NCBI GenBank assembly: GCA_977020255.1
Contig: CDROCS010002432.1
Location: forward strand, 1-64,000
Direction: 5' to 3'
Length of the DNA stretch: 64,000 nt
DNA from: Obrimoposthia wandeli
Lineage: Eukaryota
Below the pieces are notes generated by a model. That model saw nothing but the letters and a program-made list of their open reading frames with translations. It was not told the origin of the DNA and ran no database searches. This document shows positions 52,906-64,000 of the stretch, piece after piece (the first letter of the stretch is position 1; every line of letters starts with the position of its first letter). Position numbers and translations under genes: made by a program.

Positions 52906-53559
52906 TTAACCTAAATTGACCGGCTTTATGGTGTAATTACTGATGTCTTCTCCGTCATCTTTTATTGCGATAAAGCCTGTTCTACTTTTAAGCTTTTGCA
53001 AATAAGCCAGTGTTTGCGGCTGATAATGCGCGGCAAGTCCAAGTAACTCACCTAAATAAAGCGCATAACCGACGCTAATATCAGCGATAGTAAATTTATT
53101 CGCGACCAAAAAATCATGACCCTCTAAATGCAGATTTAATCGTTTTAAACGCGCTAAATACCAAATGGCATAGTCTTTAACCACCTGTGGCTGTTGACGT
53201 TCAGGCTGTTCAAATTGGCTATAACGCAACACTAATGTTTGTGGAAAGGTCAACGTAGCATCACTGCTAAACAACCAATTAAGATAAGCGCCATATTCAG
53301 GGTGACTAACCGGTAGACTAAAGTCCGTTTTTTCATAGCGCTCTGCAAGGTACAGTAACATCGCACTCGATTCTGTTAATGTGCTATCGCCATCTTTTAG
53401 AAAAGGTACGGTACCCAGTGGGTTCGTCTCTAAATAGGGCTTAGCTAAAAATCGTGGCGGAAAGGGCAGTGAGTTCAGTTTATATTCAAGCTTCATTTCT
53501 TCTAAAGCCCATAAAACGCGCAGTGAACGGGTATTGTGACAATGCCAAAGTTCGATCAT
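52906..53559 (-). CDS. Glutathione S-transferase family protein
   Basis: NTRSLRVLWALEE, NPLGTVP, TESSAM, FTIADISVGY. Confidence 0.9.
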   Translation of the reverse strand: MIELWHCHNTRSLRVLWALEEMKLEYKLNSLPFPPRFLAKPYLETNPLGTVPFLKDGDSTLTESSAMLLYLAERYEKTDFSLPVSHPEYGAYLNWLFSSDATLTFPQTLVLRYSQFEQPERQQPQVVKDYAIWYLARLKRLNLHLEGHDFLVANKFTIADISVGYALYLGELLGLAAHYQPQTLAYLQKLKSRTGFIAIKDDGEDISNYTIKPVNLG

Positions 53560-53623
53560 AGATAAATCCTGATTCATTTTTTTGAAATTACTATAACAGC
53601 CAAGTTCTAGCAACGATATTTAA

Positions 53624-53660: not shown

Positions 53661-53661
53661 C

Positions 53662-54090
53662 GAGTTGACGAGACAATCGCTGCTTTATCGTTGTACTGCT
53701 TATTTATAAGTAGTAGACAGATAAGGGGGAGGAAAGTCCGGGCTCCAATGAACAGGGTGCCAGGTAACGCCTGGGGGGCGCGAGCCCACGACAAGTGCAG
53801 CAGAGAGAAGACCGCCGATGGTTATCTTTCGAGATTTCACAGGTAAGGCTGAAAGGGTGCGGTAAGAGCGCACCGGATTGCTGGTAACAGTAATTGCAGG
53901 GTAAACTCCACCCGGAGCAAGACCAAATAGGGTTTCATGACTAGGTTAACGCAAGTTTTCATAGTATAAGCGTGGTTCGCGTGGAAACCGGGTAGGTTGC
54001 TTGAGCCTTAGAGCGATTTAAGGCCTAGACGAATGATTGTCACTCTTCCTCGGAAGAGATACAAAACCCGGCTTATGCGTCATCTCAACT
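53662..54090 (+). ncRNA. rnpB: RNase P RNA, bacterial type A
   Basis: GAGGAAAGTCC (53729-53739), CAGGTAACGCCTG, GGTAAACTCC, ACAAAACCCGGCTTA; GAGTTGA...TCAAC terminal P1 pairing. Confidence 0.97.
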
Positions 54091-54100
54091 ATTTTTAGAT

Positions 54101-54136
54101 GCCGCTTAATTATTTAATCGATAGTTAAGCGGCTTT
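54101..54136 (+). terminator. rnpB terminator
   Basis: GCCGCTTAA...TTAAGCGGC-TTT. Confidence 0.75.
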
Positions 54137-54418
54137 CTAAAATCACTATAATATCAAGTTTTTACATTGTGAAATGGCACAGGGTTAGACACACAGTACA
54201 AACTTATTCACGTCTTATTTTACTCTCAAATATCTATTCAAACGTCACTACAAAGCACATTTACCCTCTAATTATTTCCTAATAAACTTGTTGTTCTAGA
54301 TTGTAATGTTCTAATGAAACTGTAGAGCTTTATAGCTTAAAATAAGTAAGACTTAAGGTATCAAAATGAGCAGAAAAAAATAACAGTCAGCCCACAGTAT
54401 AAACTCGAATACGCAAAA

Positions 54419-55555
54419 TTAGTTAATTACAGATTTCTCCACAATGACACTAGACTCTGAGTACCTAGGGTAATCTGTATAACCACGTGCATCACCACCA
54501 AACAATGTTGACGGATCAGTAATTTCGTTCAAAGGGAGTTCATGCTTAAAGCGATAAGGCAGATCAGGATTCGCTAAGAACTTTCGGCCATAAGCGATAA
54601 AGTCGACTAAACCTGAATCGATTAATTTCGCCCCTGTTTTTGCCGTGTAATTACCGGCAACAATGATACTGCCATTAAAATTTTCACGTAAAGCATGTCT
54701 AAAACCATCGCTTACTACGGGGGCATCATCCCAATCAGCCTCAGAAAGATGAATATAAGCTAGGCCCATATCATTAAACCTCTTACTTGCCAGCAAAATA
54801 GCATCAACTGCCTCTATATCGTCCATCCCCCGCTGTGTAATGAAAGGAGCTAAGCGAATACCAACTTTATTTGCACCTATTTCTTCACTCACCGCTTCAA
54901 TTACCTCAAGAACAAACCGTAATCGATTAATGATAGAACCACCGTATTCATCATCTCGCTTATTTGAACTACGTCGCATAAACTGATCGATTAAATAGCC
55001 ATTTCCACCATGAATTTCTATGCCATCAAACCCCGCTTTCATCGCGTTGCTAGCCGCATGACGGTAATCTTGAATGATGTCTTTAATATCTTGTCTTGAT
55101 AGCGCCCGTGGAACTGGGCAATCCACCATACGGCCAATACCATCTTCACCCACAACCCATACTTGTGCATCAGGTGCAATTGCAGATGGTGCAACCGGTA
55201 GTCCATCGACATGAAATGAAGCATGGGACATTCTTCCAACATGCCACAGCTGAGAAATAATATGCCCTTTTTCTCTATGAACTGCTTGAGTGACTTTTTT
55301 CCAACCAGCCACTTGCTCAGTAGTAAACATACCTGGCGTAAATGAGTAACCTTTTCCTTGAGGTGATATTTGCGTTGCTTCAGTAATAATAAAACCTGCG
55401 CTGGCACGTTGTGCGTAATATTCAGCCATTAATTCTGTTGGAATATCATCTGGCTGAGCCGTGCGAGAACGAGTCATTGGCGCTAATACTACGCGGTTGT
55501 TCGCTTCAAATGTGCCAATTGTTTTTGTGCTAAATAAAATTGATTTTTTCATCAT
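54419..55555 (-). CDS. Old yellow enzyme / alkene reductase (NemA-like)
   Basis: APMTRSR, YYAQRASAG, EIHGGNGYLIDQF, GRKFLANPDL. Confidence 0.93.
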   Translation of the reverse strand: MMKKSILFSTKTIGTFEANNRVVLAPMTRSRTAQPDDIPTELMAEYYAQRASAGFIITEATQISPQGKGYSFTPGMFTTEQVAGWKKVTQAVHREKGHIISQLWHVGRMSHASFHVDGLPVAPSAIAPDAQVWVVGEDGIGRMVDCPVPRALSRQDIKDIIQDYRHAASNAMKAGFDGIEIHGGNGYLIDQFMRRSSNKRDDEYGGSIINRLRFVLEVIEAVSEEIGANKVGIRLAPFITQRGMDDIEAVDAILLASKRFNDMGLAYIHLSEADWDDAPVVSDGFRHALRENFNGSIIVAGNYTAKTGAKLIDSGLVDFIAYGRKFLANPDLPYRFKHELPLNEITDPSTLFGGDARGYTDYPRYSESSVIVEKSVIN

Positions 55556-55914
55556 ATTTTTTCTCCTAAAAATTCAAGGTGTTTGTTAGTTTTATATTCA
55601 TACTGCTGCTTGTTTATTGCTATTTCTTGCTGCCCACTGAGTGGAAAAAGCATTTCGACAATTAACCCATCAGGGCTAATAATAAATACTTGTCGTTCAC
55701 CTGATAGCGGAACCACTTTTTCGGTATAGGTAAGTGCATGTATTCAGTCGCTCAAGAAGCGATTTGTTCAGCAATATGTATCAAGGGTTTATCGTCGTTA
55801 TAAATCCATACACCTTTAAATGGAAAAGAAGGACGTTCTAACCCTGAGTTTTGTTCAGAAGCGTGCCATTATTTTAAGGTCAGTCGTCAGTATCAAAATA
55901 TGGTTAATATTCAT
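55552..55914 (-). pseudogene. VOC/glyoxalase family pseudogene
   Basis: AGAGG RBS, MNINHILILTTDLKIMARF*, then LERPSFPFKGVWIY...LIHIAE and VVPLSGERQVFIISPDGLIVEMLF in shifted frames; its stop overlaps the OYE ATG (ATGA). Confidence 0.75.
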
Positions 55915-56026
55915 CTATATCCTCTTCACTATTCTGCATGTATTTTGTAAGTGAAATAATAGTTATTGCTCGTAATAAAAACAATTGGCATAATTATTAA
56001 AACACTCTTCCGAAAAACGAAATAAT

Positions 56027-56935
56027 ATGGACAAGCTCGGTGATATAGATCTTTTTGTTAGGGTTATCAAAAGCCAAGGTTTGGCAGCAGCAGGTAGAGA
56101 AGTAGGACTTTCACCGGCACGAATGACAGCGAGGATCAATGGATTGGAAGAAAGATATGGTGTTCGGCTGTTAAATAGGACAACCCGGCAGATTTCTCTT
56201 ACCGACGACGGTCGTAAATTTTATGTTGCATGTGAACGTATTTTAGATGAAGTTGAGCAGGCAGAAACCTCTTTGCAAATGGGTCAAACAAGCTTTAGCG
56301 GTACACTACGTATAACCGCGCCATCTGATTTAGGCCAACAACACATAGCCCCTGTTTTATCAGCATTTGTAGAGAAGAACCCGAATATCAAACCTTACCT
56401 TTATCTTTCAGATACCGTTACTGACTTAGTTGGTGACGGGTTTGATTTAGGGATTCGATTTGGCTCCCTAGAAGATAGTACCTTGATAGCACGTAAATTG
56501 GCGAGTAATCGTCGAGTATTATGCGCATCACCCGATTATCTTAAGCGCAAAGGTATACCTACAAGCCCCGATGCATTAATGCAGCATGACTGCTTAACAA
56601 TGGTGCGTATGACTGAACCACTAACGACTTGGCATTTTCAAAATACGGATGGGAAAAGATCTCTGTCCATTAAAGCTGCTAGATCGTCGAATGACGGAGC
56701 TTTGATAAGGCGCTGGGCCATTGAAGGCGCTGGTATTGCATTAAAGTCTTACTGGGATATTGCTGAGGATCTAAAAGCTAAACGCTTAATCACTATTATG
56801 GATAATTACAAACATGACTTTAATCGCACAGGAACGTCAGCTGGAGCTGATCTGCATGCTATTTATCCAAATAAAAAGTTCATTTCACAGCGTACACTGG
56901 CCTTTATTAATGCGTTGAAAGAGCATTTTCTTTAA
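56027..56935 (+). CDS. LysR-family regulator, divergent from the VOC/OYE operon
   Basis: HTH, LLNRTTRQISLT, GDGFDLGIR. Confidence 0.93.
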   Translation: MDKLGDIDLFVRVIKSQGLAAAGREVGLSPARMTARINGLEERYGVRLLNRTTRQISLTDDGRKFYVACERILDEVEQAETSLQMGQTSFSGTLRITAPSDLGQQHIAPVLSAFVEKNPNIKPYLYLSDTVTDLVGDGFDLGIRFGSLEDSTLIARKLASNRRVLCASPDYLKRKGIPTSPDALMQHDCLTMVRMTEPLTTWHFQNTDGKRSLSIKAARSSNDGALIRRWAIEGAGIALKSYWDIAEDLKAKRLITIMDNYKHDFNRTGTSAGADLHAIYPNKKFISQRTLAFINALKEHFL

Positions 56936-57069
56936 AAATATATCCTTAAATAGCTGGCAAGTGCAATAAATTATAAAAGCCGCATATTATGAATAAGTGT
57001 GTTTGACTTTTCAGTGTATTCATAAAGTGATTTAATATCATTAAACAGTATTATTAATAATTTGAGCCT

Positions 57070-57642
57070 ATGTATTCTAAAGCGATCAAACTAACTCAAG
57101 AATTTTTTATAGAACTCAATATTGAAAATGACATTATAGTCGAAGCTGCGCGACAGTTTAAAATAATTGTAATTCAACCTGATGAGGTGTTATTACATCA
57201 AGGAGAGCAACAGCAATATGGTTATCTCATCTTGTCTGGAATATTAAAAGCCTCTTATTATTCTAATACGGGCATCGAGTATTGTAAGGAATATTATTTT
57301 AAAGATGAAATGTGTTTTTTATATTCTGCTTGGCTAACGCAATCACCTGCTACGTATCAAATTAGTGCTTTAAACACTTCTGAACTAGTTAGAGTGCCTT
57401 TAAGCTTACTAAATCTAGAAAAATGGTTACCTGCTAAAGTAGCATTACTTCAACAACAGGTACTTTATAAAGAAGATAAAGAAATATTTTTACTTTTAAA
57501 AACACCTGAAGAACGGTACTTGCACTTACTTGAACATGCCCCTAAATGGGTATTTAGTCTTAATAACATTCAACTAGCTGCTTATATTGGTATCAGCCCT
57601 ATTAGTTTATCAAGAATAAAGAATAGAATTAATAATCGTTAA
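57070..57642 (+). CDS. Crp/Fnr-family cNMP-binding regulator
   Basis: LLHQGE, TPEERY, QLAAYIGISPISLSRIK. Confidence 0.88.
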   Translation: MYSKAIKLTQEFFIELNIENDIIVEAARQFKIIVIQPDEVLLHQGEQQQYGYLILSGILKASYYSNTGIEYCKEYYFKDEMCFLYSAWLTQSPATYQISALNTSELVRVPLSLLNLEKWLPAKVALLQQQVLYKEDKEIFLLLKTPEERYLHLLEHAPKWVFSLNNIQLAAYIGISPISLSRIKNRINNR

Positions 57643-57761
57643 ACAATCGATGTATTAACTAATAGTCTGCACAATGCATTAACTTAAGTTAACGCTTTCA
57701 AAATAGCTCACCCTCATAATATCCCTATAGATTCATCCATATATTCTCTAACGGAAAGAAA

Positions 57762-58280
57762 ATGTCAGTGTTTTTTTTGTCACAATTGTTAATTGGTATC
57801 GCCATAATATTTGACTTAGCTTCATTTCAATTTAAAGAACGACGTCACATAGTAGGTTGTTTATGTATTGCTGGGGTTCTTATTTCTAGTCATTTTATTT
57901 TACTTCAACAGTATACAGCCGCGGGGTTAATGATGGTGGCTGTAATTCGTTATTTCTCAAGCATATTCACGACATCTAAATTAATCATGTCAATTTTTAT
58001 TATTTGTTCATTGCTTTTGACCACCCTTACATACACAGGAGTTGTAAGTCTTTTAAGTTGTATAGGGTCTGTAATACAAACGGTAGCTGCATTTAATCAA
58101 AATGATAAAAAATTGCGACAATTAATGATTGTTGGTACCAGTTTTTGGTTGTTCCATAATTACCTTGTAGACTCTCCTATGGCTGTAATTATGGAGGCTT
58201 TATTCATTGGTAGTAACTTGGTAGGTTACTATCGGTTCTATATAAAAACCAATGGAAAAAGCATGAAAAACAATTGTTAA
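57762..58280 (+). CDS. YgjV-family inner membrane protein
   Basis: SQLL...SFQFKERR, HFILL, WLFHNYLVDSP. Confidence 0.85.
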   Translation: MSVFFLSQLLIGIAIIFDLASFQFKERRHIVGCLCIAGVLISSHFILLQQYTAAGLMMVAVIRYFSSIFTTSKLIMSIFIICSLLLTTLTYTGVVSLLSCIGSVIQTVAAFNQNDKKLRQLMIVGTSFWLFHNYLVDSPMAVIMEALFIGSNLVGYYRFYIKTNGKSMKNNC

Positions 58281-58543
58281 GTTTTTAAACAGTCAAGTAA
58301 ATCAAAAAATAAAGTCATGTTGTTTAAACTGCACTATCAACCGATGCAATAGCATTTTTCTATCTCATTTCGGGGGCGTTAACGTATTAGGTTGATGGTC
58401 TAAATTCTTCTGCTTCGAAAATAGTCTATATCAGGCGCCGCTTAAATATTTAGGATTTCTGCAAATACTTAAAGCAAACTGGATGTGGTTTACTAAAGTA
58501 CACATGCTCTACATTTACAAGAAAAACAAGGGGTGGGGGCTAA

Positions 58544-58613
58544 CTTGTGTGTCATCTCATCAATTTCATATGCCGCTTGATTATCTAATCGATAGTTAAG
58601 CGCCTTTCTAAAA
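58544..58613 (+). repeat. Degenerate copy of the rnpB 3' end and terminator
   Basis: Aligns to 54072-54142 at about 61 of 71 positions by hand (40 of 43 over the terminator part). Confidence 0.88.
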
Positions 58614-58968
58614 CCTCATCACTTCAATCTAAATCATTACAATAAAAAATGGTTTTCAGTTAACTATACGGCAAGTATTTTGCTCTCTTTATCTACTATT
58701 TTACTCTAAATATCACCGCGAAATATATGCGCCTTATAATTTTCCGGATAAACTTTTTAGCTCGAACTGTGGATCGTCACAAATAATGAAAAACGCGTCA
58801 TACGATGAGAAAATTTAATATTTAACTTACAACAGAGAAAGGTATTGTAACTCGTCAACGCTTCAGTAAGGTCAGCTCAGATACGATACCAGAAGTTAAC
58901 ATCAATGACTTTTTGAGCTATTTTACGTGTCAGAACAAGTAGGTTTACCTTTGTCCTGACAAACAACT

Positions 58969-59320
58969 CACAGCAAGGTTATTTAAAAAACTTTCAATTT
59001 CATGATTTCCCATATCTTCGGGATGCTTCTTATCATTAAATATAATGAAACTTTTAATCCAATATAAGTAACCTGAACTCTGGATAAGTAGCACTTGCTC
59101 TAACCCATTACCTGCGTTAAAACGTCGATAAATAGCTCGCTATTCATAAACGTTCTGCCTTGGAAATGGCATAAAATGAAGCATTGATGGTGTCTATTAG
59201 TAATTTTCACCTTGTTATAGTATTTACTTTGCCACCTAAGATTTTGATTAACTTGAGTATTAAGTACTCATTATCCAGAATTCAGGTTAAGTATACTTTT
59301 TCTGTTTGTAGACTGTATCT
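58969..59320 (-). pseudogene. intI: Integron-integrase N-terminal (SAM-like) relic, split by a MITE
   Basis: After removing 59071-59287 and one TSD copy: RYSLQTEKVYLYWIKSFIIFNDKKHPEDMGNHEIESFLNNLAV, characteristic of the IntI N-terminus. Confidence 0.82.
59071..59287. mobile_element. 217-bp MITE-like element
   Basis: Terminal inverted repeats ACCTGAACTCTGGATAA / TTATCCAGAATTCAGGT (16 of 17); perfect flanking direct repeat TAAGTA at 59065-59070 and 59288-59293; no ORF. Confidence 0.88.
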
Positions 59321-59398
59321 AAATGCAAGTAGAGCAGTAAACCGATAACAAGGGTTTTCACGTAGCACCGTAATTTGAGGCTGTTTTTTCTAAAATAG

Positions 59399-59467
59399 AA
59401 ATTCTACAGGCTTGTTAGCTCTGTGGAGTCTAAGTTGAAACTGTATAAATTCTAAAGGCTCGTTAGC
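59399..59467 (+). repeat. Two 21-bp direct repeats ending in GTTAGC (attI-like?)
   Basis: AAATTCTACAGGCTTGTTAGC (59399) and AAATTCTAAAGGCTCGTTAGC (59447), 19 of 21 identical. Confidence 0.65.
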
Positions 59468-59570
59468 AGTATGACAATGACCTGTCGTTAAGCTGACGTA
59501 AAGATGTCGTATACAAAAAAGTAGTTTTTTAGCAGGATATAGTTTCAATATATTTATGTGAGAAATACAA

Positions 59571-59726
59571 ATGGAAAACTCAAAGAATAACAATTTTGTG
59601 ATAAGTTTAATGTTAACGACGATAGGTACGGTATTGACTACTATAAAAGTCGATTATTATTTAGATATTGCTGTTTTAAGTGTGGCGGTTGTTATTGGTG
59701 TACTTGGTTGTACAAAAGATAAATAG
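59571..59726 (+). CDS. Putative 51-aa membrane peptide
   Basis: MENSKNNNFVISLMLTTIGTVLTTIKVDYYLDIAVLSVAVVIGVLGCTKDK*, two hydrophobic stretches, weak RBS. Confidence 0.4.
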   Translation: MENSKNNNFVISLMLTTIGTVLTTIKVDYYLDIAVLSVAVVIGVLGCTKDK

Positions 59727-59747
59727 TAAGTGAACTGCTACAAGTGA

Positions 59748-59774
59748 TAAAAGGGTCATAGCCGTTTTAAGAAG
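59748..59774 (+). repeat. Dispersed 27-bp repeat, copy 2
   Basis: TAAAAGGGTCATAGCCGTTTTAAGAAG, 26 of 27 identical to the reverse complement of 3833-3859. Confidence 0.8.
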
Positions 59775-59849
59775 GAAGTAATCTACAATAAAGGGGCCGT
59801 TTACGCAGCACATATAATCGGCTGTAGCCTCATAAAAACATAAAAATTT

Positions 59850-59873
59850 AAAAGGCAGCCTAAGCTGCCTTTT
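59850..59873. terminator. Terminator
   Basis: AAAAGGCAGC-CTAA-GCTGCCTTTT. Confidence 0.8.
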
Positions 59874-59892
59874 GTCATTTAAAAAATCGTAT

Positions 59893-60447
59893 TTACTTAA
59901 TGAATTTTTTAAATGGTGCATCTACAGGCGTATCAGCAAGGTGATTCGTGTAGTTGCTCATCACTTTTTGCGATAAACCTACAATAATTTCAAGTAGTTG
60001 TTGTTTACCATAACCCGCTGCAAAAAATGTCTCGATTTGCTCATCGCTAATAACACCGCGTTCACGTGTCATGGCTAATGTTGTTTCGCGTAGTGCTTCT
60101 AATTTAGGGTTGGCAAGTGGTGTTTTGTTTACCAGAGCATCAACAATATCTTGGTCAACGTTCATTGAAGCTGCAATTGCGCTATGAGCAGGTACACAGT
60201 AATGGCAGTTATGTTCAACGTTAATTGATTGCCATACTACGGTAAGCTCTTCTGCATTGAATGATGTTTTTTGAAATAAATCATGCAGTACTTGGTAACC
60301 CTTAAGTAATGTTGGTGCTTCAGCCATTACTGCGTGTAAGTTAGGTAACATACCAAATGCAGCTACTGAATCAGCCATTAAAGGTTTTGCTTCTTCAGGT
60401 GCGTTTTCTGCCGTGTATAAAGTAAATTCTGTCATGTTTAATTCCAA
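59893..60447 (-). CDS. Carboxymuconolactone decarboxylase / AhpD-like protein
   Basis: FGMLPNL, EHNCHYCVPAH CxxC motif, KVMSNYTNH. Confidence 0.9.
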   Translation of the reverse strand: MELNMTEFTLYTAENAPEEAKPLMADSVAAFGMLPNLHAVMAEAPTLLKGYQVLHDLFQKTSFNAEELTVVWQSINVEHNCHYCVPAHSAIAASMNVDQDIVDALVNKTPLANPKLEALRETTLAMTRERGVISDEQIETFFAAGYGKQQLLEIIVGLSQKVMSNYTNHLADTPVDAPFKKFIK

Positions 60448-60546
60448 TAAATAATTAGGTTTAAGTAACTTCGGAACACATAGTATTTGATTTTGAGCGA
60501 CTGTTCAAGTTAAAATTGAGCGACTGTTCAATTTATTGAGAATGAT

Positions 60547-61134
60547 ATGGCTAATAAAGTTAAATTCGAACGCGAGAATGTTATTCGCGTTGCTAGCCAG
60601 CTATTTTGGCAAAAAGGTTTTCATGCCACATCAACACGTGATTTACAAGATGTTGTTAATATGCGCCCAGGTAGTATTTATGCCGCATTTGGCTCTAAGG
60701 AAGGGCTATACAGTGAGTCATTAAAAGATTACACCGTACAAATGAAAGATCAGATAGAGGGTTTTTTATCGAGCGCTGATACAGTTCTTAGTGGGTTACG
60801 TGCGTTTGTAGAGAATGTCATCATTAATACAAAAGATTGTAGTCCAAGTGCTATTTGTATGTTGGTTAAAGCAAACAGTGAATTTGCAGAAAAAGACTCG
60901 AATTTATATCAGTTGACTATAGATTTATCTGCCCAGTTTGAACGCTATTTAACACAATTGTTTGACCAAGCCATTAACCATGGCGAGCTAAATAGTAGGC
61001 TTACAGCCCTTGAGTATGCCCGTTTTTTTCAGGTGCAATTTACCGGGTTACGCGGTTACTTTAATCGCCCAAATGTGGCGCCGTTAGCTGAGCCAATGAT
61101 CAATCAAATGTTTATGTTAATGAAGAACCTATAA
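60547..61134 (+). CDS. TetR/AcrR-family regulator
   Basis: LFWQKGFHATS, PGSIYAAFGSKEGL; divergent from the AhpD-like gene. Confidence 0.92.
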   Translation: MANKVKFERENVIRVASQLFWQKGFHATSTRDLQDVVNMRPGSIYAAFGSKEGLYSESLKDYTVQMKDQIEGFLSSADTVLSGLRAFVENVIINTKDCSPSAICMLVKANSEFAEKDSNLYQLTIDLSAQFERYLTQLFDQAINHGELNSRLTALEYARFFQVQFTGLRGYFNRPNVAPLAEPMINQMFMLMKNL

Positions 61135-61459
61135 CAGCATTAATAATACGCATATGAAATATTTTTCATTCGCTAAAAACGCCAGTTATTGCAGGTAATG
61201 ATTAAGCCCAATCCATACGCTACTCATTTTGACCAATGATTGCCTTATGAATAGTTAAATAGCTGTTATTGCCGGCTATAAAGCAACTTATAATTATTCC
61301 CAAGCCTGAGGGGATATTAGGAGAAGCAAAAATATTTTTAAGCGCTTTGTCACTGTGTTGAATCGCTTTTTATTTAAAAATATCGCACAGAAAAACAATT
61401 AGTGTATACACTGATTGAATTATTTACATAAGCACATTATTTACATAAGCCATTACTTG

Positions 61460-62161
61460 ATGACACAACATATCCAGACCCTGAAGCACTTATTAGCCAC
61501 AAAGGATGATAAAGTACTAAAACAGCATTACTTAGCTTCCAGTGAAGCTGAAAATATTGTTCAATTAGCTCACCTTTTTCAGCTGGGAATGAGTGAACTT
61601 TCTACTTATGATTCTTATCAGCAGCTTGCCACTGACTTGATAAAAAGCAAAAGTTTTCCTATTGCTCTAATAGCACAAATGAAAACAAGTGAAGCCTTAA
61701 GCTTTTTCACTTTAGCATTGCAATTAGTGGATAATTTTAAGTTAACAAACCTCCTTCAGCGTAATGCGCTGCATTATTCTTTTCAAGGAAGTCGAAAAAT
61801 AGCCAGTGCTGCACCGTTCAATTACTTGCGCTCTATGATGCTATTTGAAAGTAATGATACCTTGCGTGACGCGCTATGCCAGCGTGATCAGTTTCATTTG
61901 ACACCCATTGAAGCATATTTACAGGGTAATGAAGATTTTACCGACTTAGCCCCTCATGAATTTAATGCCTTATTGGCCTTGATAGAAATTGAAAGTAAGC
62001 AACAAGCTGTTGAAAAAAATAACTATATATCGACTATTAAAGTCGTAGGGGAATTATGTCGAGAGCAAGCATTATCTATATCGACTGACTTACAGCGGTT
62101 GGTGTTAATAGCGATATATTTTTCGAAACCGATTAAAGAGGTTGTTCATGATTTACGCTAG
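61460..62161 (+). CDS. Hypothetical protein
   Basis: Long ORF (track 61415-62161), probable ATG at 61460; no recognised motif. Confidence 0.65.
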   Translation: MTQHIQTLKHLLATKDDKVLKQHYLASSEAENIVQLAHLFQLGMSELSTYDSYQQLATDLIKSKSFPIALIAQMKTSEALSFFTLALQLVDNFKLTNLLQRNALHYSFQGSRKIASAAPFNYLRSMMLFESNDTLRDALCQRDQFHLTPIEAYLQGNEDFTDLAPHEFNALLALIEIESKQQAVEKNNYISTIKVVGELCREQALSISTDLQRLVLIAIYFSKPIKEVVHDLR

Positions 62162-62406
62162 ATAAATGTGCATGGTGTCGCTTTTATCTTAGGCAACCGC
62201 CGGTATTCTTTTAACTTTTATTACGTTTAGTGCAAAGCAATCAAATATTACTGTCTATAAATAATTAAACTTTTTGATAATATTTAATAAAATCAATATG
62301 ATTTTGATAGTTGCTTTGATAGTTATTTGCAGATTTAAGTAGACAGCTGTTTCAATATCAATCATATTGCATTTTTTTATTGTATAAATGGATTTTAGGA
62401 ATAAAA

Positions 62407-64000
62407 ATGAAGTTAATAACAGGATTTTTTGTCGTTGTTATATTTTTTGTCAGCTTTAGCGTTTTCTCACAAAGTACTACCGCTCAGATTGAACAAATTC
62501 AGCAGTCGAGCAGCCAGCATAAACCAGAACAATTATTAGCATTACTCGGTGAACAACAGCTAGACGCTAGTAATCGTTTTCTAGTTCTAGACACCCTAAG
62601 TGACTTCTACTATTCACTAGGTGACTTCAATCGAGCACTTTCATTCGCAGAGCAAGCCTTATATGTCGCTCAAAAACATAAGTTAGCGCTTGAAACGGGT
62701 AAGGCACTGAAAAATATTGGCATAATGCACTACTCAACCGCTGATATAGACTCTGCAATTGTTTACTATAAACAGGCATTACCATACTTCCATGCCGATA
62801 AAACGCCTATTTTAAGAGCTAATGTGCTAAATAATATTGCATTGGCTTATATAAAAAGTAGTGACATTATTGATGCGCTTGAGTACTTCAAAGAAGCTGA
62901 GTTTTTATATCAAGAATATGGTACACGAATCGATGCTATCGATATTCAATATAACATTGCGCTGTTATATATTCGTTTAGACCATGCTAAAAATGCCATT
63001 GAAATGCTAAATGAAGTCATCGAAGAAAGGTTAGAAATTGATGATACCAGTGGACTATTTCTCGCATACTCGGATCTTGTTGTAGCACTAAAGCTGGACG
63101 AACAATTCGATGAAGCGTTAGCTCTTTCACATCGGGTGATAACGTATTACACAGAACAAAACGATTATTTCAACTTAAGCTCCGCGCTACATAATATTTC
63201 TGATCTCTACTTGAAAATATCCAAGCCTTTAGAAACAAAAAAATATGCATTAGAAGGAATGGCGTACGCTAAAAAATCTCAGAATAATAAAGCCGTAGTT
63301 GGCTTTTTTTACACCTTAGCTAAAGCTCAAATTGTACTCGGAGATTTGTCTGGCGCCATGCAGACGATTAAGCAAAGTAATGAGTTTATTAAAACGCTCA
63401 ATAATACCAAGCTTGAGAGTACAAATGATGGACTTTATTCGTTACTTTTGATGGCGAAAGGTGAGCCAGAACAAGCAATTGATCGCTATCAAAATTACCT
63501 TGTAGGTATCAAAAAAGCACATAGCGTCGCTTTTAATAATCAACTGGCTAAATTTGAAGCCAATCAATTAAAGCAAAAACTAGCGAACCTAGAGCATCAG
63601 GGCTCATTAAATTCATTACAAAAAGAGAATGAAAGTCGATTTAAAAATATGGTTTTTATTATTATCATTTTTGCATTCCTTGTCTTGTTTTTACTCTATA
63701 GGAGAGCGACAGATAAAAGTATTAAAAGACATTTAAAACAGAAGGTTAATGAAAGGACTATGGAGCTTGAGAATGTTAACAAAAAGCTGTTAGACCTTTC
63801 ATATTTTGACGGATTAACAAAACTTAAAAACCGTCGATGTTTTGATGAGGATATAACCTTGTTATGGGATAACAAAGAAAATCAAAACAATGCCTTCCAT
63901 ATTCTAGTCGCAGACATTGATTCTTTTAAGCAATATAACGACACCTACGGACATGTCGCTGGAGATAAAGCACTCACTAAAGTAGCGGAGGTGCTAAAAA
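62407..64000 (+). CDS. TPR-repeat membrane diguanylate cyclase (GGDEF), truncated by the window end
   Basis: Manual translation from ATG 62407: signal, TPR-like helices, TM, then LSYFDGLTKLKNRR...ADIDSFKQYNDTYGHVAGD; open to 64000; not in the ORF track. Confidence 0.85.
   Translation, partial: MKLITGFFVVVIFFVSFSVFSQSTTAQIEQIQQSSSQHKPEQLLALLGEQQLDASNRFLVLDTLSDFYYSLGDFNRALSFAEQALYVAQKHKLALETGKALKNIGIMHYSTADIDSAIVYYKQALPYFHADKTPILRANVLNNIALAYIKSSDIIDALEYFKEAEFLYQEYGTRIDAIDIQYNIALLYIRLDHAKNAIEMLNEVIEERLEIDDTSGLFLAYSDLVVALKLDEQFDEALALSHRVITYYTEQNDYFNLSSALHNISDLYLKISKPLETKKYALEGMAYAKKSQNNKAVVGFFYTLAKAQIVLGDLSGAMQTIKQSNEFIKTLNNTKLESTNDGLYSLLLMAKGEPEQAIDRYQNYLVGIKKAHSVAFNNQLAKFEANQLKQKLANLEHQGSLNSLQKENESRFKNMVFIIIIFAFLVLFLLYRRATDKSIKRHLKQKVNERTMELENVNKKLLDLSYFDGLTKLKNRRCFDEDITLLWDNKENQNNAFHILVADIDSFKQYNDTYGHVAGDKALTKVAEVLK

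Follow-up and report, generated by a model that had tools for sequence, protein, structure and literature searches.

The DNA analyzed here, hereafter called the window, is the stretch of 64,000 nucleotides (nt) at positions 1 to 64,000 of contig CDROCS010002432.1 in the Obrimoposthia wandeli assembly GCA_977020255.1, and our subject is its gene for RNase P RNA, rnpB, together with the 4.4-kb islet of genes that follows it. RNase P RNA is encoded by an essential, single-copy ribozyme gene. The bacterial contig, of which the window constitutes the initial 64 kb, is 194 kb long and belongs to an assembly of 1.35 Gb and 6912 contigs (G000); the source is therefore a bacterium that is associated with the eukaryote or contaminates its assembly; retrieval based on the RsmI protein places it with Cognaticolwellia/Colwellia, at protein identities of up to 97%. 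The genes run in the order lpoA (minus strand), rsmI (plus strand), a GST gene (minus strand) and rnpB (plus strand), after which the islet region begins. The rnpB gene itself (53661-54091, plus strand) specifies an intact bacterial class A RNase P RNA, matching Rfam RF00010 with 310 bits over model positions 1-367 without truncation, and is thus still whole at what we interpret below as the left attachment (att) junction, attL, of an integrated element. Relatives were compared through a set of 80 loci around rsmI (designated L followed by a number), in nearly all of which rnpB follows rsmI.

The end of rnpB recurs on the far side of the islet. The proximal repeat (54072-54142, plus strand), which contains the core CTTATGCGTCATCTCAACTATTTTTAG and a hairpin with its stem arms within 54101-54133, opens with the final 20 nt of rnpB; after a further 9 nt comes an imperfect palindrome of 33 nt, extended by TTTTAG/CTAAAA. 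The distal repeat (58544-58613, plus strand) is identical to it at 61 of 71 positions, with a single 1-nt indel (BLAST E of 1e-17 within the window); alignment and BLAST thus agree with an earlier note on this DNA, which had reported from the letters alone that tail and terminator recur here at about this identity. The pair is unique, since the whole of G000 yields two matches only (E of 6.7e-14 for the distal copy), and, allowing for as many as 3 mismatches, the window holds two occurrences of the hairpin pattern, where shuffles predict 0. The att core corresponds to the 3' end of rnpB from CTTAT onwards, about 20-26 nt. The proximal tail is of the AACTA variant, as in L005, L030 and L037, whereas the distal tail, which departs from the functional one by five changes in 24 nt, resembles the ACCAA type of L017 and other close relatives, a difference that would weakly support separate origins of the two tails over local duplication. 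Directly left of the distal core lies the junction GGGGCTAA (58535-58543, plus strand), the presumed P-arm end of an inserted element, carrying a short R-A/G-G-Y-T-R-A signature; the same signature stands before the second copy of the core in L010, L051, L045, L081 and Colwellia echini, its forms being GCTGA and GTTAA, with GCTAA in the window. At 58437-58452, about 107 nt before the distal copy begins, 15 of 16 nt agree with the left arm of the proximal hairpin; this isolated match could mark one more decayed hairpin, or chance alone could account for it.

Across about 66 Colwelliaceae loci the region downstream of rnpB is hypervariable, with a gene content that differs in almost every species. 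A second rnpB tail is found 1.9-27.7 kb downstream in L004, L005, L010, L012, L045, L051, L081 and the C. echini genome (G001); except in L005 it starts at the identical base (…|CTTAT…), a crossover boundary common to these loci, and a similar element-end signature stands before it. The cargo between the tails is unrelated across species, comprising in turn Usp/PsiE/SulP/LysR genes, thioredoxin, HDAC, a histidine-kinase/GGDEF set, flagellin, IS3 with Phd/ParE, and Fic with IS110. Occupied and empty sites can be paired, as the earlier note had proposed to do across strains, and in both pairs the breakpoints fall at the repeats. In L017 (C. aestuarii) the rnpB tail is followed by 36 nt that match the distal flank of the window and then by a homologue of window 59871-61124; window positions 58544-58649 align with L017 12110-12211 at 82% identity, and on this alignment L017 would represent the state without the 4.4-kb islet, in other words the empty site for the window. 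Similarly, L010 and L006/L009 have flanks that are 96% identical, and what sets L010 apart is an insert of 2.9 kb with an 81-bp tail repeat at its borders. Comparison of L010 with L058 further indicates horizontal transfer of such islets, because rnpB and the HDAC islet are 94% identical between the two while rsmI is only 74% and lpoA 67% identical.

Three relatives (C. echini A3 at L037:11711-13477, and L067 and L070) have directly after rnpB, and on the same strand, an open reading frame (ORF) for an integrase of 573-592 amino acids, in which Pfam recognizes DUF6538, DUF3258 and Phage_integrase and PHROG_1 'integrase' is hit at 1e-32 to 1e-34. In L045, where IS110 interrupts the gene, and in L023, the copy behind rnpB is truncated. 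The linkage of this integrase with rnpB was followed in two surveys, which are samples of 301 genomes of the family and 401 of the order, with counts that cover the genomes searched and with order-level spread defined only as the same GTDB order as C. echini. At the family level rnpB lies immediately upstream in 13 of 14 integrase matches, and at the order level in 8 of 12 additional matches of 26-37% identity; pooled, rnpB adjoins the integrase in 21/26 matches at identities down to 26%. Tyrosine integrases next to duplications of the rnpB tail, for which the earlier note had suggested a search, are thus present in relatives. Two further relatives of this integrase type (31-33% identity), at L118 (~2872-2971) and L122 (~2882-2978), adjoin a thiamine pyrophosphate (TPP) riboswitch instead of rnpB, which may reflect a target switch to another structured-RNA locus. 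The most complete view of an integrase-bearing element comes from the 27.7-kb island of C. echini A3 (L085/L086; G001:C103:19769-47564), whose attL reads rnpB, core, hairpin, arm and integrase gene, and whose right junction, attR, reads GCTGA|CTTATACGGTCAACTCAACTAATTTA followed by a classical stem-plus-T-run terminator. Its cargo includes an LlaJI-type restriction enzyme with a C5 methylase, AAA ATPases, a PD-(D/E)XK nuclease and a Macro-domain protein, and four tRNA genes lie near its right end.

The hairpin and the adjoining arm are borne by the element. A classical stem-plus-T-run terminator follows rnpB in 22 relatives without hairpin and arm, and since the attR of C. echini shares it, the element must have brought the hairpin and arm with it. 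Compensatory changes at 10 pairs of the 14-bp stem across 24 sequences indicate that the hairpin is maintained as a structure, while a simple terminator scan did not return the window hairpin as a canonical intrinsic terminator. The description of the repeat as the rnpB tail plus its own terminator hence stands for the tail, whereas the hairpin belongs to the element and not to native rnpB; it would replace the rnpB terminator or a processing signal. The arm extends for ~150-250 nt after the hairpin and carries GGTACACGG repeats, which are probable arm-type integrase binding sites. Such sites are usually located between the core side of att and the start of the integrase gene, and all the integrase loci have 2-3 direct repeats, GGTACAC-like or GTCACAC-like, between the hairpin after rnpB and the integrase start codon. 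A profile of the arm, for which 11 relatives with the integrase supplied only the sequence after the hairpin, gave two matches below E 0.01 in the 64-kb window, namely 58623-58776 (1.4e-4) and 54150-54292 (1.6e-3), with the next best at E 0.5. In the relatives it matches directly after the tail in 19 loci and after the classical terminator in 0/22, and elsewhere in those 19 loci it matches only after the second tail copy of L045.

These nhmmer matches account for the patchy similarity that had been noticed for about 150 bp beyond each repeat, and they point to two decayed P' arms on the plus strand: one at 54144-54316, with a degenerate GGTACACGG-type repeat pair and a TTTTGCCTGATAAACTT-like motif, and one at 58619-58796. 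The integrase gene, which follows the arm in intact relatives, is missing after the arm at 54144-54316. Because both window copies carry hairpin and arm, the locus reads as a tandem accretion of two decayed islands, in which the two copies would both be attL-type junctions. Further copies of tail and arm, two in number, 1.2 kb apart and without rnpB, were found at L087 (G002:C38:81083-82476) on a different contig of the metagenome-assembled genome to which L067 belongs; with small ORFs of toxin-antitoxin size between them, they look like a further accretion array.

Five coding units occupy the islet, in agreement with the list given in the earlier note. An OYE-family flavin oxidoreductase resembling N-ethylmaleimide reductase (NemA) lies at 54419-55555 on the minus strand (Pfam Oxidored_FMN, 1.4e-82; NCBIfam NF007899, 425 bits, above the cut-off). 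On the same strand, at 55552-55775, is a VOC/glyoxalase-family pseudogene, whose ORF fragments match the C-terminus of an intact orthologue of 171 amino acids in G205 (L110:6623-7138; Pfam Glyoxalase, 4e-6); the remnant retains the C-terminal ~54-80 codons with a frame break and has lost the N-terminal half. The plus strand then carries a LysR-family regulator (56027-56935; Pfam HTH_1 and LysR_substrate), a cNMP-binding, Crp/Fnr-like protein (57070-57642; Pfam cNMP_binding, 1.6e-7) and a YgjV-family inner-membrane protein (57762-58280; Pfam Imp-YgjV, 1.5e-45). The block OYE-VOC-LysR, in part with the cNMP-binding and YgjV genes, is found at 66-88% identity in four genomes (G109, G132, G205 and G219) away from rnpB, and therefore represents captured cargo that is not native to the site; the same islet was not found beside rnpB in other genomes. 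Taken by itself, the window islet is an ordinary decayed remnant with redox/stress and regulator genes.

To the right of the distal copy lies DNA of other kinds. At 58945-59368 (minus strand) there is an N-terminal relic of an Xer/IntI-type tyrosine recombinase (Pfam Phage_int_SAM_4, 7.5e-11 on the piece 58945-59094), cut in two by a miniature inverted-repeat transposable element (MITE; ~59063-59295, in the interval 59060-59300) of ~235 bp with 34-nt terminal inverted repeats, at least 33 copies of which are spread over many contigs of G000. Another copy of this MITE sits directly after rnpB in Colwellia polaris (L007:12312-12560). No similarity was found between the relic and the rnpB-associated integrases, and it is thus not their cognate enzyme; it is no part of the rnpB element and is other DNA accumulated in the same hotspot. 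A peroxidase-related, carboxymuconolactone-decarboxylase-like gene (59893-60447, minus strand) and a divergent TetR regulator (60547-61134, plus strand), which also follow the rnpB tail directly in L017, are probably the cargo of an older element. The next genus-conserved gene, an ORF of 1274 amino acids, is 13.2 kb from rnpB in the window contig versus 0.8 kb in L013. On the other side of rnpB, the GST gene (52906-53613, minus strand) is present between rsmI and rnpB in only some relatives, and in L012-L015, L018 and L019 rnpB starts ~50 nt after rsmI; its patchy occurrence marks the 5' side of rnpB as an indel site, too.

We consider it very probable that the 3' end of rnpB is the chromosomal attachment site of integrative islands mobilised by a tyrosine integrase of ~590 amino acids, and that the window preserves two such elements, stacked and decayed. 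The unique repeat, the empty sites and the integrases adjoining rnpB all support the earlier proposal of an old att-type insertion or cassette accretion at this gene. In circular form, the element would bear a duplicate of the rnpB tail, next to it a hairpin of its own as replacement, and, between this hairpin and the integrase gene, an arm in which GGTACACGG-type repeats are paired; upon integration, an intact rnpB would be rebuilt at attL and the old tail pushed downstream to attR. An older element would have left the tail, hairpin and arm now at 58544-58796. A younger one would then have inserted into rnpB again; 54098-54316, with hairpin and arm, and 54419-58280, with the cargo, would stem from it. 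The proximal repeat would be its attL, whereas the distal repeat, a displaced rnpB tail with hairpin, would be its attR and the former attL of the older element. Both integrase genes would have been deleted later, and the 4.4-kb islet would now be an immobile, att-flanked remnant, fixed in place unless an integrase came in trans or RecA recombined the repeats.

Several observations weigh against this explanation. No recombinase gene was found within 54143-58543, and tblastn of 54000-64000 with five integrases (E up to 10) gave nothing credible as a remnant of the rnpB type; elsewhere in G000 only distant tyrosine recombinases of 25-34% identity were detected, the best reaching 34% over a partial stretch. 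The islet had indeed been described at the outset as devoid of a cognate integrase. That an enzyme of the rnpB type catalysed this particular insertion we consequently infer from the relatives, as we also infer the order of the two events. Moreover, conservation of the right arm of the element is limited to ~8 nt, the islet, with a GC content of 0.30-0.45, is not clearly foreign, and neither a fuzzy pattern nor BLAST found, between 58.8 kb and the conserved right flank (~67.3 kb of the contig), a third, native tail that would define the far end of the older element. Finally, the two hairpins belong to one subtype and are 90% identical, a similarity that also fits homologous recombination between pre-existing copies. 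The islet might accordingly have entered by RecA-dependent recombination, either as a Campbell-style circle or by linear import anchored on the left by rnpB, with att-like junctions inherited from an older integrase event in the donor. This course of events we judge rather unlikely, even if the shared tail, hairpin and arm offer 70-250 bp, enough for RecA, the lack of an integrase in G000 would fit it, and the L010/L058 pair, which shares the whole of rnpB along with the islet against flanking genes at ~70%, suggests that rnpB moved with the islet. It presupposes an architecture made by an integrase, as seen in the shared CTTAT boundary and in the element-end signature next to the distal copy on its left, so that it bears on the final step alone and offers no different origin; neither can it explain the linkage of the integrase with rnpB.

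The remaining alternatives dispense with such an integrase. Local duplication of the rnpB 3' end, as in Escherichia coli, with unrelated genes inserted later by illegitimate events and no site-specific system, is improbable in our view. It can draw on the short tandem arrays of tail and terminator in L048, L065 and L073 and on that of E. coli K-12, but would require many species to have acquired the same boundary and arm independently of one another, and leaves unexplained the dedicated integrase beside rnpB, the different terminator at the attR of the C. echini island and the clean pairs of occupied and empty sites. Even smaller is the likelihood that we are dealing with integron attC-like hairpins and that the islet is a cassette array of an IntI-like recombinase surviving as the relic at 58945-59368. 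The relic does lie ~330 bp right of the distal copy, and the window hairpin holds GTTAAGC, which is compatible with a GTTRRRY core; however, this core is not conserved, the hairpin arm being ATCAAGC or TTCAAGC in most relatives, the repeat unit starts inside rnpB at a fixed base, and the islet of 4-5 genes in both orientations, with a regulator, is unlike cassettes. In addition, transcription of the relic runs in the direction of the distal copy, and attI and the cassettes would accordingly be expected on its other side, and L017 has the tail without the relic. We have rejected the cassette interpretation on the core, the multi-gene cargo on two strands and the orientation of the relic. As for a dispersed palindrome of the repetitive extragenic palindromic or bacterial interspersed mosaic element type (REP/BIME) that came to lie near rnpB by chance, it has nothing but the palindromic form in its favour and next to no credibility: such families have many dispersed intergenic copies, whereas G000 has two and the rest of the window none, and in relatives the hairpin is tied to the rnpB tail. 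A genome-wide REP-like family, which had been named as the finding that would overturn the integrative proposal, was rejected on this copy number.

Integration at the rnpB 3' end bears on a long-standing peculiarity of E. coli, in which tandem 113-bp repeats after rnpB are said to have been described by Reed and Altman in 1983. The K-12 sequence agrees with the earlier note's statement that these repeats contain the rnpB 3' end, and the array comprises 113 bp x 3.5 (L125:3847-4239; NC_000913 3269846-3270238). As in the window repeat, each unit has the last 20 nt of rnpB, from the same CTTAT, plus a terminator; unlike the islet, the units are short, head-to-tail and gene-free, with a classical terminator and an extra rnpB-like 20-mer. 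Three Colwelliaceae arrays (L065:11583-11877, L048:6220-6509 and L073:12160-12440) are of the same type, and in all four the unit, of 113-130 bp, consists of an rnpB-like 20-mer, a non-rnpB segment of the GCTATACC…AGCGG type, the last 20 nt of rnpB and a classical terminator, the non-rnpB segment being common to the repeats of K-12 and the arrays of L065 and L048. On this resemblance, integration at one and the same core may have left behind the tandem units of E. coli and Colwelliaceae as relics. The E. coli rnpB loci inspected showed no integrase, and the E. coli-type unit gave only terminator-like matches to the attR of integrase-bearing elements; lacking a tie to such an element, the relic link is put forward as a hypothesis. 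Within E. coli the region also varies among strains, as seen in C 237-04 (L126) and ECP19-598 (L127): yhaB-yhaC may be there or survive in fragments only, the 113-bp repeats differ in number, and the K-12 arrangement downstream of rnpB is covered to at least 80% in only 3203/5426 genomes. A broader synthesis would take the rnpB 3' end as the dedicated attB of a large clade of DUF6538/DUF3258 tyrosine integrases (~500-620 amino acids) that has spread in Alteromonadaceae and other families of the order, the native rnpB terminator as overwritten in roughly half of the Colwelliaceae species, and the E. coli repeats as relics of the same process; taken jointly, these propositions are tentative, and we lean against all of them holding together.

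The implications extend beyond this locus. The full-text literature searched contained no description of rnpB as an attB or attachment site, which is not proof of novelty. An integrase clade with high fidelity for rnpB gives programs that search for islands a new site at which landing can be predicted; at present they assign rnpB islands to 'intergenic'. The target classes of the TIGER/Islander resource are tRNA/tmRNA, protein-coding and intergenic only (PMC12424338). The integrase and its att site are also a candidate pair for genome engineering in marine gammaproteobacteria. Furthermore, an essential RNA gene would here receive its terminator or processing hairpin from mobile elements, and a testable origin is offered for the repeats at the 3' end of E. 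coli rnpB.

Among known systems, integron cassettes share with the islet the imperfect palindromes that bound variable DNA and the IntI/Xer-type relic nearby. The islet departs from them in having a repeat that begins within rnpB, a GTTRRRY motif that relatives do not conserve, and several cargo genes in both orientations; RYYYAAC...GTTRRRY cores with single, promoterless ORFs in the same orientation beside intI/attI, which characterize attC arrays, are not what the window presents. Integration at the 3' ends of tRNA and transfer-messenger RNA (tmRNA) genes is a textbook rule, exemplified by islands and prophages with P4-type integrases and by CP4-57 at ssrA, and the resemblance to these islands is considerable. 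In relatives of the window the gene for a tyrosine integrase adjoins the RNA gene, the gene 3' end carried by the element rebuilds the gene at attL and leaves a partial tail at attR, and the elements are sporadic among relatives, variable in cargo and found in tandem arrays. The differences lie in the target, which is the gene for RNase P RNA, in the unusual length of the integrase (~590 amino acids) with its DUF6538 and DUF3258 N-terminal regions, and in the replacement hairpin that the rnpB element supplies after the gene. Direct repeats of the target 3' end flank the window islet as they flank such islands, whereas a recombinase encoded next to att is missing from the window and present in L037, L067 and L070, which makes the window element a decayed member of the group. 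Closest to its present state are the cis-mobilisable elements (CIMEs), att-flanked and integrase-less remnants that arise by accretion beside integrative and conjugative elements such as ICESt1 of Streptococcus thermophilus. No active partner element or cognate integrase was found in G000, in which respect the islet differs from CIMEs; like them, it is bounded by two att-type direct repeats of the same family, encloses no recombinase and adjoins, in tandem array, a second remnant at this site, and by analogy it could in principle be moved by an integrase acting in trans.

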